Source: Thalia democratica (Eukaryota). From it: a DNA stretch of 64,000 bases. The notes below the pieces were generated by a model. The model did not search any database. It was not told where the DNA came from and saw only the letters and a program-made list of their open reading frames with translations. Both the position numbers and the translations under genes were made by a program. Position 1 is the first letter of the stretch, and each line of letters starts with the position of its first letter. This document shows, in pieces, positions 25,821-33,646 of this stretch. Where the stretch lies: contig OZ241832.1 of the NCBI GenBank assembly GCA_965202585.1, positions 23,870,001 through 23,934,000 of the forward strand, written 5' to 3'.

Positions 25821-28800
25821 ATGAAATTAGTCTTTTTACTGTTCTCACTTCTCGCCCACCTCCAATGCGACGGGGACGAAACCCCAACAAGCGGCGGTCT
25901 CCCTTCCCGCGGTCTGCCCGGAAAGCGCGGCCAGAAGGGAGAGAGCGGAGCAGATGGGCTGAGGGGATTTACCGGAAAATCCGGCAAGCAGGGCGTGAAA
26001 AGTCGGTTGAAAATTGGTTTTAGTTTTAGCCAGTTTAAAAGCTTTTTTTTTACACACATGTGTATTTGATAGTTTTCTAAATATGTTTTCAACTTACTTT
26101 TATACTCTAAGTAATTAAAATGTTTTTTGATCTTTTTAAAGTTTTGATTTATACGATATAGTTTAATGTTTGTTCTCTAATATTGTTTTTTACATCAATG
26201 TATACTTGATAGTCTTGTGTTTTTAAACTAATGTGTTGTATTCTAAATGCTTTTAAGCCTATTTTGTTCTTAATACGCTTCGATTTAAAAGGTATAAACA
26301 CAAAATATATGTTTTTAAATAATATATCATAACTAAATCAGGAATAAAAATTATTTAGTTAAGTACAAAAATTTATTATTAAAATACATTTTCAAATCTC
26401 TAAGAAGAGTTATTATGAGTTAGGTCTACCTTTATTTGTAAAACTTTACACTATACTCTACTTTGTTATGATGTCATTTAGCTTAGAAAACTGATCATAA
26501 ATAAAAAGACAAACAAATTGTTGATAATTTTAGCGATTTTTTTGTTTTTAAGTGAGCCTGGTATTATTATAATAAGCTGTAACTTACTGACGATCACAAG
26601 AAATTTTACATTTCATGTGTGAAACAGCTGTATAAATTATAGTTTTTATATAATTAGATAAATACGTATAAATATATACATTAATCAAAATTTTAAGTTG
26701 TAAATAAACAATATTGAAACATTCTCATCTCTAGGAAAGCCTTGTGCTGTAAAAGACATTGAAATCAAGAATGGAAGTATAGGTGACATCATAGGCAATC
26801 TTATCCCAACCGGTACAAAGATATCTGTCGTTTGCGACCCTGGTTACCACCTTGTAGAAGAAAATCCAGTTTGCCAAGACGGAACTTTTTCAAAAACAAG
26901 CAAAGTTATAGATATTTGCCAACGTTCGTAACGTTATTGTTTAAAGTTTAAATAACTATAAGAATTTTGATAAATTTACTATTAAGACAGATTTACAAAT
27001 GGAAAGTCTAAACCAAAAAATTAAAAACTAAATAGTAGTTAACTTGGCTTCATAAGCTAGGTTTTGTAAAATTTGTTAACTTTAAGTTGGAATTTACTTA
27101 CAGTTTTAAAGATAGACATACTTTTCAAAACTTGTAAATATTTTTTAGTTAGTAGAGAATCATGAGTTTCAAATATCATGAGTTTCAAATTTATAATTTC
27201 ATGATAAAAACAATTGTTTTGTAAAATTCATTTATGCAATAAGATTTACAAGACACACATCTTAAAAAAAACTAGATATATTTCGAGCAATTGTCATCAG
27301 TAAGGTACTAAGCACACAAGATATAAGATTTTACAAACTTATATAGTAACTAACTAATCAAACAATCATAAAGTAATCAAGAGTTTAAAAAAAAAGACAA
27401 AGGCAATTAGTAAAAATTAAAATCAATTATGTTAACTTACGTTATAATTAATCAACAGTAAAACTAAACATCGATAGATTTAAAACTGCACTTATAAAGT
27501 ATTACGAAAATAAAGAAACGGTATAGTCAAAATCTTTTTGCTTAAATAAAACATGTTTTCTTAACAAAATACAAATAGCTTACAATTTAATCAAATCGAA
27601 AACATTACTACAAGTTTTAAAATTTTTAAATCTATTTATATTTAAAACTACTTGAACATGTTGAACTATTAACCAAATTTTCTGCAATGTGTGGACGTTT
27701 AGATGCATTTTTAACCTTGACCGGTATATCATTTTTCGTTTCTGAAAAACATAAGTATTTCTATTTTATATAAACAGAAATATATCTAGTTTTATTTAAA
27801 CTTTGTGTCTTGTTTATCTTATTGTATAGTTACTGGTCACTTATGTTCAAATACATTTTACTCGTTCTCAGCATTTGAGTATACAAAAGTAATTTCTAGT
27901 TAAAGGGCTGTAATTAATTACCAACTAATTTTATTTAATTTTTTTAAACCTAACATTTAATTTTATTATAGAAGCATATAAACACATAAAATAATTTTAT
28001 CACTTCAAAAACAACAAAGTATATCGACTAACAACACTTTTATACATTAACTGCACTTAATAAGAAAATATTTATAAACAATCTATAAATTTTTTAATTT
28101 AATTTTAGCTACATTACATGATTGTAATAATGTAAAGAAATTCTACCCTGGCGCTCAAAATGGTGTTTATACTATAAAACCCTATGAAGATGTTACACAA
28201 AACTTAGAAGCTTTTTGTCAGTTCGACTCTGATAATAATGGGTGGATAGTCAGTTTTTTTGATGTTTTCTAAACTAACAAGAAAATCTCATTTTTAGTGT
28301 ACTATTTTTATGCTTCACCCTTTTTTTTCCCAATATTAAAACCGAGCCATTGAAAATCGCAATATAGTTTTATTTAATGAAACTTACACTTTATATACAC
28401 AAATTTAAAACTGCGTAACTGCATAGTTTTTTTTTAGCGTATAACATTATTATGTTTGTAGAAGATTATAAAATTAATGCTAATTCTTTGTACAGTGTTG
28501 TACACTTGTATACAATTAATAGTAATTCGTTTTAATAATTTTAGATCAGTTTAAAATCAGAAGCGACTCATTACATAACTCTGTACACTACTTTTAAAAC
28601 GTTTGTTATATAACCTTGTGTCCAGGTCTTACAAAAAAGGACAGACTCGTCAACGAGCTTCAAAAGAAGATGGTCGGTTTACGTCACGGGGTTCGGTGAG
28701 AAAACAGGAAACTACTGGCTCGGTTTAGTTAACATTAGTGTATTTCGTTTGTACATTAATGCAATATTGCTGTTTGTAACATAAAACAAAGTTGAGCAGT

Positions 28801-30410
28801 TTGTCTATTGGTTTACTTTAACACAAATATGATTCGTTCGTAAATTGTTGCAACAAAACTGTATTTGATGATGAACATGTAGTTGATTAAAATTAAATTT
28901 TATTTAGTTGTTAAAGTTTCAGTATATACACATAATTATTTTAAAACAATATTAATATTGTACAAAACAATGAAAATTTAATTAAAAGGGTTGGAGAACA
29001 TGTACGCACTTCTGAAAGGAAGGGACTTCGTGCTTAGAATCGAGCTTGAAAAACTTAATGGAGAAACTGCATACGCCGAATATGAGTAAGAATTTTTATG
29101 AATTTTAAACACAAACAAAAAATATAAATTAAAACAAACTAGCCTTATAAACTTTTTAAATATAATTAATAATTATTTAAAAATTTCGATCATGCTAAAA
29201 AATGTCATTTTACAGAAAATTTACACAGAACAAAATTTACAAATATAAAGGTTGAAAAATAGTATTTTTAAAATTGATTAATAATACTAAAAAATTTTTT
29301 TATAACTTCAACACACTTAAAAATATTTTTTCGTGTCGAAGACTTAATAATGCGTAAACCAAATCGTACACAGTATTATGCCAGTATTGAAACTTACAAT
29401 TTATACTAGCTTTCTCGTTTGATTATTTCTAACTTAGTAACTTATACCACTAATCGAGGAAAAGAATGTTAGAATAGTTAAAAAAGAATTGTTTAACATT
29501 CCGTTTTAATAGTTTTATTATTTTAGTGAGTTTTACCTAGGAAGTGAATCTGAGAAATTTGCTTTACATGTTGGCCAGTACTCAGGAACTGCCGGTAAAC
29601 ATTTTTATTATATTTTTTAATTTTTACTGACAACTTAAATTCGTTTCACTAAGTTTTGTTCTATAGTTGAATGAATGATCATAAAAAATCATTCCTTTGT
29701 AAAGTTATAGTGTTTGTTCTCAATATAAAGTTTAATTGGTAAATTCTGATATTAAGAATAGACATTTAGCAAAAATATTTTATTTTTTTTTTACAACAGG
29801 CGATTCGCTAGCTTACCACAATGGAATGAGATTTACAACCAAAGATCAGGACAATGACCAGTATTCAGGTAAGTATTATATTGCGTAGTTATAAAATAAC
29901 AATTCAGTATACTCAAATTATTTTGTATGAATCTTATAAATTCATTAGAGTTTTAGATTAAACAATAAAAAAAATAATTTAACTAATAAACTATTTACTA
30001 ATTTGTACTCTAATATAACATGCTAAACAATTTTCTTATATAATCAAACTCTCTAATTTTTAAATCGAATTGTGCCACCGTTTACGGTTTAAAACTTTAA
30101 GATTAAACAAAAAAAAACACTTCAAAAAACAACTTATATACTATTTACTATTTCAAATATTTTTAATATTAATAATAACTAATAACCTTTCAATCAAACT
30201 CATTCCTTTATTTAAAATATTTTTGAAGGTAATTGCGCCACCGTTTCTGGAGGCAGAGGAGGTTGGTGGTTTAAAACTTGCAAGTATTCAAACTTGAACG
30301 GGGAATACCAAGACCCGAGTAAGAATAACTACAGAGGTTTGTATTGGTACCATCTTAATGAACACCATTCCCTCAAAACTTCAGTTATGATGGTGAAGAG
30401 AAAAAACTAA
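25821..30410 (+). CDS. Secreted ficolin-like fibrinogen-related protein: signal peptide + collagen + sushi/CCP + FReD; join(25821..26001,26735..26923,28109..28248,28626..28722,28989..29085,29527..29594,29800..29868,30229..30410), 340 aa
   Basis: All introns GT-AG with compatible phases (1,1,0,1,2,1,1); total 1023 nt = 341 codons. Signal peptide MKLVFLLFSLLAHLQC. Nine Gly-X-Y triplets (GLP GKR GQK GES GAD GLR GFT GKS GKQ). Four-Cys CCP exon PCAV...VVCDPGYHL..PVCQDG...DICQ. FReD motifs DC..GVYTI..FC..NGWI/VLQKR..GFG..YWLG..LRIEL..GTAGDSLAYHNGMRFTTKDQDND..NCA..GGWWFKTCKYSNLNG..MMVK. Confidence 0.93.
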
Positions 30411-30580
30411 TATTTGTGTGCATTTTTAACAGTTTAAATCATTTTACTTTATGTACAGTATTTTTTGCAAATTTTTATAACAATTGTTTTGTATATGTGT
30501 AATTGAATAGATACTTGTTTTACATTAAATAGTTTTACTACAATTGTAAATTATGTACTGTTTTTAATTAGCTTGTTAAA

Positions 30581-30586
30581 AATAAA
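30581..30586 (+). terminator. Candidate polyadenylation signal of the ficolin-like gene
   Basis: First AATAAA after the stop, about 170 nt downstream. The AT-rich background lowers specificity. Confidence 0.35.
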
Positions 30587-32557: not shown

Positions 32558-32669
32558 ACTTGTATTACTACACGTACATATTGATATTAATGAACAAATA
32601 GTGAAATATTAATACAGCATATCAATTTAGTAAAAACCTTTAGCAAATTTTGCTTAACGACATTTCTAG

Positions 32670-33039
32670 CCGCAGGCGCAACAATCAACAGCGGCAAGAC
32701 AAGTACCAAGAGAATTGTCACAAAGACACCGTACACCAGAAGAAATGTCACAAGGACAGCAAACACCAGGAGAAATGTTACAAGCACAACAAGCGCAAGA
32801 AGAAACGTCATTAGGACAACAGATACCAGGAGAAATGTCAACGGTAGAAATGTCGCGTGACATAAGAAGAAAAATTGTTAAGGTGTGGTCGATGAAGCAC
32901 TGCGTAGCGCCAATTCTCATCGCATTTCTGCTTGTCGGTGTTGCGGCTGCGGTTTTTTTTTTTTTTGGCGGGAAAAATCATTCTGGCGATTTGAACGTTG
33001 GCAATGCCTTAAACGTCACAGTGGAACAGAACGTTACAA
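32670..33039 (+). CDS. Exon of a type II single-pass membrane protein with 10-aa cytoplasmic repeats (rest of gene not located)
   Basis: Branch-like GCTTAAC and acceptor CATTTCTAG| at 32669. Open frame PQAQQST...; first in-frame ATG at 32745. Basic RRK..K precedes hydrophobic VAPILIAFLLVGVAAAVFFFFGG, followed by NHS/NVT/NVT sequons. Probable donor A|GTCTGA after 33039. Confidence 0.65.
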
Positions 33040-33646
33040 GTCTGAGTTTATTCAAATATTTTTATCATTTTTTTTTCTTTAGATAACGTTGTTAATTCTG
33101 TTTTTATTTTTAATACTTTTTTTTCTGATCGTAACGCAAGTAAATTTTGTTTTTGAACAAGAAAATCTCGCATGGTTGTAATAGTTTTTAATAATGCGTC
33201 AGAGTACAATGATATTTACTATTTTACTTTTACAACTTTATTGTCAATTTTTAAATCAGTACAGCTATGAAGGTTAAAAGTTTATATAAAATTTCCATGT
33301 CTAATCAATTTTATCTCTAGTTTAAACATTTGTTCTACACCAGCCTAAAGCTCAGTTGATATTTAAAAAAATCTATACAACAACAAAAGTACTTAAAATC
33401 AGATAAAATGTAATAATTGTTTCAGACGATGAAATAAACTAAAAGCGTCGATGTTTTACAAGTTCCAACAATTATATCAAAAATCTTAGCAAAAAGAAAA
33501 CTATTTAGAAACTTATACTGTATTTGTATTTCAATTCTAACAAAAAAAATTGACATCAGTCAAGTAAGTAAACTGTTAAAAGTTTACTTTTTGTTTAGAA
33601 TTTTAGTTGTATATCATTTTGATTGTAAGTGTTTAAAATTTTGTTA

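Follow-up and report, generated by a model that had tools for sequence, protein, structure and literature searches.

A ficolin-like gene with a sushi/CCP module between a collagen-like stalk and a fibrinogen-related domain

Ficolins and collectins, in which a stalk carries a lectin head, are the textbook initiators of complement's lectin pathway. The origin of this design in chordates is still debated, and tunicates are the sister group of vertebrates. The ficolins, both vertebrate (FCN1-3) and ascidian (Halocynthia roretzi), are secreted proteins in which a signal peptide is followed by a Gly-X-Y stalk bearing a Lys-containing P-G-K-X-G motif, and then, after a direct short-linker join, by a C-terminal fibrinogen-related domain (FReD) that has a DxDxD Ca loop and is held by two disulphides. 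Collectins and the ascidian protein GBL likewise consist of a stalk (collagen and/or a coiled-coil neck) and a lectin head, GBL having a coiled coil instead of collagen (PMC8605247); their heads are C-type CRDs.

Lectin heads joined to sushi/CCP modules have also been described. The soluble oyster protein CgCLec-CCP, which has a lectin head and one CCP, attaches to MASPL-1 at the CUB domain of the latter, with cleavage of C3 as the outcome (PMC8605247), and it offers a functional model for lectin-CCP fusions. Its head, however, is a C-type lectin domain rather than a FReD, it has no collagen, and taken as a whole it is no homologue of the protein described here. The combination of CCP and FReD is on record in protostomes: Dreissena polymorpha (zebra mussel) XP_052232783 has six sushi modules and a FReD, a 289-aa 'ryncolin-2-like' protein has one sushi and a FReD, and FreD-C1 of the nemertean Lineus ruber also combines the two. 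In all three, as in our gene, a sushi module stands directly N-terminal to the FReD, and none of them has a collagen or coiled-coil stalk. The CCPs of these proteins, which are predicted or catalogued only, are ~27-30% identical to the CCP of our gene, and it is likely that the two architectures were assembled independently.

The gene that we describe resembles the ficolins in its predicted signal peptide, collagen-like stalk, P-G-K-X-G-type lysine site and FReD, but it does not have the direct join: a CCP module of 63 codons stands between stalk and head. Judged by its domains, the collagen-CCP-FReD arrangement is an unusual form of a familiar class of lectins. When 1.84 billion proteins were searched by phmmer with the CCP exon, no ficolin-sized relative and no collagen-CCP-FReD protein came up, the matches being only multi-sushi proteins, three short ocean-metagenome ORF fragments and one Dreissena protein. 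No protein combining collagen, sushi and FReD occurred among the best 120 of 1946 and the best 120 of 7900 FReD matches, and since the surveys covered only these, absence is not proven. A literature search did not turn up any account of a protein with this architecture.

Exon structure and domains of the gene

The gene lies on the + strand at positions 25821-30410 of the 64-kb stretch of DNA that was analysed (the window). The exon model, built from the sequence, has eight exons with every intron of the GT-AG type, and its coding sequence of 1023 nt predicts a protein of 340 aa and ~36 kDa. Domain identities were taken from a Pfam scan performed exon by exon, and these matches, together with the GT-AG model, bear out the preliminary description of the locus as an eight-exon collagen-CCP-FReD gene. 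All glycines, cysteines and splice sites are intact, and by its sequence the ficolin-like gene is real and intact, protein-coding, with a product predicted to be secreted; its splicing pattern is one that we infer. Three sequencing runs that contain the stretch were found, all of DNA type, and their contigs extend across introns and include no informative exon junction. A search for a second tandem copy within the 64-kb window found none. An AATAAA pattern, a candidate polyadenylation signal, is present at 30581-30586, ~170 nt past the stop codon, with an additional ATTAAA at 30524. The host is an AT-rich marine (tunicate-type) animal.

Exon 1 (E1; 25821-26001) carries the start codon and a predicted signal peptide (residues ~1-16, MKLVFLLFSLLAHLQC). 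A short linker of acidic character separates the latter from a conserved collagen-like run, which has nine uninterrupted Gly-X-Y triplets (nt 25911-25994), and the exon ends in phase 1. Its score against Pfam Collagen, 22.2 bits (E 1.2e-4), lies under the cut-off of 27.2 because the run has just nine triplets. Compared with ficolin collagen the run is short and poor in proline, having a single Pro, and in three close copies of the gene (L013, L015 and L016) the Gly that follows the PGKRG motif in triplet 3 is replaced. For these reasons, the formation of a triple helix is uncertain.

Within this run, LPGKRGQ (residues 32-38, nt 25914-25934) had been likened to the MASP-binding motif of ficolin and MBL collagen, a comparison that holds in part. 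P-G-K-R-G-Q matches that motif at four of its five fixed positions, and the longer SRG(L/I)PGKRG is shared by the window family with L041, a distant paralogue that also has collagen, the remainder of which differs. However, the motif proper has a final Pro and usually an aliphatic residue at Xaa (PMC2856262), whereas our protein has Arg at Xaa, and Gln, as in the window copy, or Lys takes the final Pro position. The window copy also differs from ficolins in lacking an N-terminal Cys segment, its only N-terminal Cys being Cys16, where the signal peptide ends. An 18-residue Cys-rich N-terminal segment is kept in the C5 paralogues (...GECQMRTTFHCG...), L026 and L039, and a more divergent segment with two Cys in L041. 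As it is absent from the window's subfamily, higher-order disulphide-linked oligomers may have been lost there.

Exon 2 (E2; 26735-26923) encodes one sushi/CCP module in 189 nt between two phase-1 introns, so that the earlier account of the CCP as a single phase 1-1 exon stands. It scores 25.4 bits for Pfam Sushi (PF00084), where the cut-off is 20.7, has four cysteines in the 1-3, 2-4 pattern, includes an N-G-S glycosylation sequon, and finds as its PDB sequence matches the CCPs of factor H, CR1, CR2 and DAF. The conserved CCP Trp between Cys3 and Cys4 is absent: the window family has Phe there (DGTF), and relatives have Ile, Leu or Phe; a hydrophobic substitute at this position is tolerated in some CCPs. 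An AF2 model of the exon from an 11-row alignment is all-beta with low confidence (pLDDT 60.5), and in a Foldseek search of the PDB with this weak model nearly all top matches were CCP-module proteins, none of them significant (E >=0.27).

The four Cys are kept in 10 of 11 homologues, the eleventh being a truncated fragment, and the Cys and core residues are invariant in an alignment of these homologues down to 40% identity. Every intact copy in the genome, and paralogues down to 33-44% identity, have retained all four Cys and an open frame, together with the splice sites on either side, while related exons on ocean-metagenome contigs keep the four cysteines and the phase-1 acceptor. Among divergent copies the exon has a dN/dS of 0.29-0.58 (0.29 for the window copy against L024, p=0.0016). 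Purifying selection acts on the CCP exon (dN/dS ~0.3, p=0.002).

The donors of both E1 (AAAA|gtcggt) and E2 (CAAC|gttcgt) are weak. The GT of the E1 donor is found at the identical place in nine of nine close copies, and the acceptor before (G/E)KPC is common to paralogue L026 and three metagenome contigs; because these homologous acceptors are phase 1, we read the weak E1 donor as phase 1. A phase-0 splice between E1 and E2 (GGC|gtgaaa with gaaag|CCT) was considered and rejected, as the homologous acceptor of L026 keeps the frame only in phase 1.

The remaining six exons encode a FReD that is, by its profile matches, complete and C-terminal. Exons E3, E4, E5, E7 and E8 match Fibrinogen_C (PF00147) colinearly over profile positions 3-219 of 221. 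E3 (28109-28248; positions 3-44) begins the domain and holds its first disulphide pair (HDC...AFC), E4 (28626-28722; positions 45-77, 30.5 bits) contains VLQKRTDSSTSFKRRW...GFG...YWLG, and E5 (28989-29085) covers positions 80-109. E6 (29527-29594; EFYLGSESEKFALHVGQYSGTAG, 22 aa), alone too short to score in Pfam, fills positions 110-140; it is placed by its frame and splice sites and is conserved in all paralogues. E7 (29800-29868; positions 141-161) carries the Ca-site-type loop DQDND (nt 29844-29858), and E8 (30229-30410; positions 164-219, 35.2 bits) encodes the ligand-pocket part (NCAT...GGWWFKTCKYSNLNGEY...) and ends in the TAA stop codon (30408-30410). The two disulphide pairs, HDC/AFC in E3 and GNC/KTC in E8, are invariant in the 10 intact paralogues together with DQDND, and the retention of a Ca-binding-type loop noted in the preliminary description is thus confirmed.

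E8 is the most variable exon among the paralogues, with dN up to 0.29 and the variation concentrated around the pocket. Positive selection on this exon is unsupported (pairwise dN/dS 0.25-0.66), and we speak only of concentrated variability. A His after the second pocket cysteine is a feature of ficolin-type FReDs; the C5 copies have this His, whereas the window's subfamily has Lys in its place.

The gene family and its architecture

The gene does not stand alone. Fourteen genomic loci have the eight-exon collagen-CCP-FReD layout, 10 of them intact, with ORFs of 340-358 aa (n=10), and four broken or incomplete. At least four further, divergent loci combine CCP and FReD with a stalk of either coiled coil or collagen plus coiled coil, giving a lineage-specific family of roughly 20 loci. 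In L026/L027 and L039 the Cys-rich N-terminus and a coiled-coil exon precede CCP and FReD, L040 has a coiled-coil stalk, and L041 places collagen and a coiled coil before the CCP-FReD pair, making its stalk collectin-like; in place of the C-type CRD of collectins the head is a FReD, and the CCP is extra. In one subgroup of relatives there is no CCP.

In the tree, the collagen-CCP-FReD genes form one clade, within which the window's cluster is a derived subclade (support 100/99). The window's subfamily has nine copies, three of them pseudogenes. Whole-gene dN/dS is 0.28-0.44, and 0.26-0.42 within this subfamily. The arrangement seen in L026 is also present on an ocean-metagenome contig, where the end of the coiled coil, the CCP and the FReD exons E3 and E4 follow one another as they do in L026; its exons are 85-96% identical to those of L026 without indels, and its introns 64-83% identical with indels.

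The comparison of these loci points to the CCP-FReD pair as the constant core of the family and to the stalk (collagen, coiled coil or both) as its variable part. This bears on the earlier proposal that the gene arose by exon shuffling, with a CCP inserted between the collagen and the FReD of a ficolin. A CCP exon of symmetric phase 1-1 has the form expected of a shuffled module. Modular exon exchange in the family is well supported, because coiled-coil exons of the same phase occupy the stalk position (in L026 such an exon adjoins the CCP exon, both being phase 1-1) and because the CCP-less subgroup exists. The position of the CCP between collagen and FReD is likewise correct, but since CCP and FReD are the constant core of a family of this size, to speak of insertion into a ficolin probably reverses what happened. 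Module shuffling in recognition molecules can be seen clearly in this living family, in which one CCP+FReD head is combined through phase-1 exons with collagen stalks, coiled-coil stalks or both.

Predicted function and competing readings

On present evidence the window gene is, by its sequence, an architectural variant. A lectin-type recognition role is likely from its domains, and we consider it reasonably probable that the protein acts as a humoral lectin in pattern recognition, in the functional class of ficolins and collectins, and as a member of a CCP-FReD family with varied stalks. Oligomerisation, ligand binding and a downstream partner are all steps that we infer. In such a molecule, the collagen-like stretch would zip three chains and the FReD heads would trimerise, as in ficolins; acetylated or carbohydrate ligands would be bound via the Ca-loop and the pocket region, the part most variable among paralogues. 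Between stalk and head, the CCP would serve as a fixed neck or adaptor, and it may offer a protein-binding surface to a partner, which could be a protease, a cell receptor or a thioester protein.

A different role, outside immunity, would place the family among extracellular-matrix, tunic, mucus-filter or signalling proteins of angiopoietin, tenascin or MFAP4-like type. Among the PDB sequence matches of E8, all of them FReDs, angiopoietin-2, tenascin-R and MFAP4 are nearer than ficolins (ficolin-2, TL5A and FIBCD1 are also among the matches), and the nervous system is the site of expression of Lineus FreD-C1, the sole CCP+FBG protein for which expression is recorded (PMC9835746). However, an immune lectin family is usually marked by tandem expansion, many pseudogenes and variability centred on the pocket, and a collagen or coiled-coil stalk with a lectin head is the collectin/ficolin design. 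We judge a non-immune role unlikely.

Coupling of the window protein to complement is plausible from its motifs and domains. The protein would then be an initiator in which the PGKRG lysine motif and/or the CCP recruits either a protease of MASP type or a thioester protein resembling C3, and ligand binding by the FReD directly triggers complement. The conservation of SRG(L/I)PGKRG between the window family and L041, while the other collagen diverged, is consistent with this, as are the typical use of CCP modules as protein-binding units in complement proteins, the oyster precedent (PMC8605247), and the presence in the genome of many CUB genes and of several loci with a thioester domain (C3/A2M/TEP-type). 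Against it stand the departures from the motif at the final Pro (Gln/Lys) and at Xaa, the loss of the Gly past the motif in the three close copies, and the coiled-coil-stalk members, which are without the motif yet keep the CCP; moreover, neither a MASP orthologue nor a true C3 (ANATO + C345C) was identified among the loci examined. We hold this form of coupling to be quite unlikely. Still more doubtful is the broader proposal that pelagic tunicates assembled their own lectin-pathway initiators, with a CCP-FReD core, interchangeable stalks, and SRG(L/I)PGKRG and/or the CCP directly recruiting a MASP-like protease or C3/TEP. If the CCP or the lysine motif does bind a protease or a C3-like protein, lectin-CCP initiators would have arisen more than once, and the family, as the deuterostome equivalent of the CLec-CCP route of the oyster, would amount to an experiment of nature in exchanging the stalk type while preserving the effector link.

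Finally, we consider it very improbable that the CCP exon is normally skipped to give an ordinary collagen-FReD ficolin, which its phase 1-1 symmetry would allow without loss of frame and with which the weak E1 and E2 donors agree, or that the window copy is a decaying, functionless member, as the missing Cys-rich N-terminus and the broken third of its subfamily might suggest, given, on the one hand, the purifying selection on the CCP exon and the preservation of its four Cys, frame and both splice sites in intact copies, distant paralogues and contigs of related organisms, and, on the other, the intact glycines, cysteines and splice sites of the window copy and the constrained dN/dS within its subfamily.

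The eight-exon gene and its copies

The window is eukaryotic and strongly AT-rich (G+C ∼25%). At 25821-30410 of its forward strand, eight open segments separated by canonical GT-AG introns give, by predicted splicing, a frame of 1023 nt (340 codons). Scanning the gene against Pfam exon by exon, we found that exon 1 (25821-26001) has a Collagen match of 22.2 bits, which the shortness of the Gly-X-Y run keeps below the 27.2 cut-off, and that exon 2 (26735-26923; 189 nt, phase 1-1) matches Sushi at 25.4 bits (cut-off 20.7). Exons 3 (28109-28248), 4 (28626-28722), 5 (28989-29085), 7 (29800-29868) and 8 (30229-30410) give colinear Fibrinogen_C matches covering profile positions 3-219 of 221, with the 22 residues of exon 6 (29527-29594) filling positions 110-140. 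The protein, predicted to be secreted from its typical N-terminal signal peptide, carries nine uninterrupted Gly-X-Y triplets (GLPGKRGQKGESGADGLRGFTGKSGKQG), then a sushi (CCP) module with four cysteines, and then the fibrinogen-related domain (FReD), in which both disulphide pairs and a DQDND loop are present. A candidate polyadenylation signal, AATAAA by sequence pattern, lies on the same strand ∼170 nt 3' of the stop. The preliminary description had proposed just such an eight-exon collagen-CCP-FReD gene, with the CCP as a single phase 1-1 exon and a DQDND loop in the FReD, and it is borne out in every detail visible in the sequence.

At least 14 loci of the genome have this eight-exon layout. 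Frames are intact (340-358 aa) in ten of them; the other four are pseudogenes carrying a stop codon (L013) or a frameshift (L018 and L020), or are incomplete (L021, where exon 1 was not found and exon 3 is divergent, with a non-AG acceptor). Seven same-strand copies, 30-220 kb apart, form an array over 560 kb (C8:23.54-24.10 Mb) around the window, which is C8:23870001-23934000, two lie on the unplaced scaffold C34, and contig C5 holds three tandem copies at ∼26-kb spacing (C5:22.94-22.99 Mb) as well as two single copies.

A search of sequencing runs gave three that contain at least half of the sampled window words, introns included; their contigs are genomic DNA and show no joined exons at the predicted splice sites. 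All three agree in showing, over parts of introns 1 and 2 (26520-26683 and 27176-27995), a summed contig depth between ∼10-fold and several hundred-fold that of the flanks, peaking at ∼246,000 against a few hundred in neighbouring sequence, which points to high-copy repeats within these introns. Further downstream, ∼2 kb from the gene, 32587-33086 has overlapping ORFs on both strands with short repeated peptide units (such as TFLLV.VVL on the minus strand and PGEM/QQ on the plus strand); a tandem repeat, either coding or of low complexity, is the probable explanation.

Membership of the CCP exon in the gene

Comparison among copies provides good evidence that the CCP exon belongs to the gene. 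All 14 loci keep this exon with both flanking splice dinucleotides (AG and GT) and the four cysteines of the module. Among the more divergent copies (dS 0.25-0.45), dN/dS is 0.29-0.58 for this exon and 0.28-0.44 for the whole gene, and comparing synonymous with non-synonymous changes in the exon between the window gene and L024 gives p=0.0016 (Fisher test). Introns can still be aligned at 74-80% between these divergent copies, so that the signal of constraint is the synonymous excess, and not conservation confined to exons. CCP exons 33-47% identical lie directly 5' of FReD exons, as in the window gene, at the paralogous loci L026/L027, L039, L040 and L041, which we read as much older relatives that retain the module. 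The exon preceding the CCP in L026 has a phase-1 end, and the frame is kept by the acceptor tag|AA AAG CC only; the weak AAAA|gtcggt donor of exon 1 in the window gene was therefore chosen, by homology.

Relatives also occur in ocean metagenomes. Three short ORF fragments, taken from Tara and further marine metagenomes, represent homologous CCP exons (40-50% identity), and a phase-1 AG acceptor precedes each. Homologous CCP exons are found on L028-L032, AT-rich (27-30% G+C) marine contigs of 0.5-1.4 kb, with adjoining FReD exons on L029 and L030. Judged by sequence, L030 is likely the orthologue of L026: the CCP is 86% identical, the order is the same (end of a coiled-coil exon, CCP exon, FReD exons 3 and 4), and exons are 85-96% identical without indels, whereas introns are 64-83% identical with indels. 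L029 is a second copy of the L030 locus. The DNA of these five contigs is eukaryotic (pelagic tunicate-like) and was gene-called as if prokaryotic, and their 'proteins' therefore include translated intron ends.

Partial alternative skipping of the CCP exon, with the frame preserved, may occur. Complete skipping is unlikely, given the retention of the exon in 14 of 14 copies, its dN/dS, the older paralogues, the metagenome contigs and the phase of L026.

Stalk variants and family history

A genome search that used the final exon of the FReD, followed by reading of the loci, shows that across the family a single type of head sits on several different stalks. In the window cluster (C8/C34) the order is signal, collagen, CCP, FReD. 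The C5 loci L022-L025 have in addition, between signal and collagen, a Cys-rich segment (GQLSNLGECQMRTTFHCG), encoded by 54 nt of exon 1 and bringing two extra cysteines; its site in the window is 25871-25875, and all 18 residues are absent from the entire C8/C34 subfamily. The motif recurs in the distant paralogues L026 (Q.P.LSQCRLRTTLNCG) and L039 (NQCQLRYTVNCDDE), and its absence from the C8/C34 subfamily is therefore a derived deletion. L041 (C9:33175000-33184900, minus strand) has a Cys-rich N-terminus, collagen (SRGIPGKRGKQG...) and a coiled coil before its CCP and FReD, a collectin-like stalk in which the collagen SRGIPGKRGKQGKFGEKGEKGEEGSVGIKG runs on as GDKGERG in the following exon. 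In L026/L027 and L039 the Cys-rich segment is followed by a phase 1-1 coiled-coil exon, then CCP and FReD. The three tandem genes L033-L035 (C5:17.10-17.35 Mb) begin with a coiled-coil exon of ∼110 residues and pass directly to the FReD exons without a CCP, while L040 (C5:7.98 Mb) has a long coiled coil resembling theirs and keeps the CCP.

In a maximum likelihood tree of the FReD only, one clade (support 81/83) unites the collagen-CCP genes, and within it the window cluster is a strongly supported derived subclade (100/99). L033-L035 group with CCP-bearing genes: together with L026 and the collagen clade they make a larger group (89/92), inside which branching order is unresolved. The simplest reading is that CCP-FReD would be the old core of the family, that stalk modules would have been exchanged in front of it via phase-1 exons, that one subgroup would have lost the CCP, and that the window subfamily would later have lost the 18-residue Cys-rich segment. 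On this history exon shuffling is well supported. Thus, of the proposal of an exon-shuffled molecule with an inserted CCP, the shuffling of modules stands, given the phase-1 exons and varied stalks, but 'CCP inserted into a ficolin' probably has the history reversed. With its constant CCP-FReD core and changing stalks, the family is a clear case of stalk exchange in the sister group of vertebrates.

Likely function and relation to known lectins

Vertebrate and ascidian ficolins consist of collagen and FReD (PMC11312191; PMC5465252). The window protein departs from this two-domain layout by its CCP and from ficolins also by the lack, in the window copy, of N-terminal cysteines; we therefore reject a ficolin proper and class it as a ficolin-like FReD lectin, of the known kind that combines an accessory module with a ficolin- or collectin-style stalk. 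CCP with FReD and no stalk is already on record, in Dreissena polymorpha (XP_052232783, with six sushi modules, and a 289-aa protein with one) and in Lineus ruber FreD-C1, mentioned in passing (PMC9835746). We surveyed FReD proteins twice, taking the nearest 120 of suitable length (best 120 of 1946 and of 7900). Among the best 120 of each survey, partner domains were TSP1, EGF, PAN, C-lectin, collagen and sushi; collagen occurred with FReD in three metagenomic proteins and turtle ficolin-1, sushi with FReD in Dreissena, and collagen and sushi together with FReD in none. The only tunicate matches among these were from Clavelina lepadiformis, with FReD as their sole Pfam domain. We did not find the collagen-CCP-FReD architecture described in a non-exhaustive literature search.

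By analogy with ficolins, tachylectin-5A and FIBCD1, the FReD would trimerise and bind acetylated or carbohydrate ligands, and the stalk would keep the three chains together. The window copy is itself intact, as are its FReD structural residues and Ca loop. The family shows expansion, pseudogenes and pocket-centred variability: amino-acid differences cluster in the last exon, near the segments NCAT..GG.GGWWF..C..S.LNG and ..W...... that form the pocket, and pairwise dN/dS in that exon is below 1. Some features of the window subfamily hint at function that is relaxed or altered: the N-terminal cysteines are missing, Lys replaces a His that C5 paralogues keep next to the second pocket Cys, on its C-terminal side, and three close copies have Asp or Cys for the third-triplet Gly. 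The CCP accompanies the FReD on collagen and coiled-coil stalks alike, and so most likely works together with the head, as a rigid neck or docking surface.

In complement, CCPs usually serve as the protein-binding modules, and the preliminary description had suggested complement coupling. While its architecture (exon model, Pfam) and module shuffling (varied stalks) hold, we consider it unlikely that the CCP, the collagen lysine motif or both link the window protein to complement. Circumstantially in favour, the motif is conserved in the distant L041, as SRG(L/I)PGKRG, and several loci with a thioester domain, as well as many CUB genes, occur in the genome; however, the motif is imperfect, coiled-coil members lack it yet retain the CCP, and neither a MASP nor a true C3 was identified in the genome. 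A precedent is the oyster protein CgCLec-CCP, a lectin carrying a single CCP, which attaches to a MASP-like protease at the CUB domain and also promotes the cleavage of C3 (PMC8605247). The window gene is a candidate, open to testing, for a second and independent route of this lectin-CCP kind. Thioester-domain (TED_complement) exons lie at C5:64.66-64.88 Mb, C5:31.10-31.17 Mb, C8:65.02 Mb, C1:71.83 Mb, C5:60.12 Mb and C10:22.19 Mb; these putative C3/A2M/TEP-type loci include two tandem arrays.
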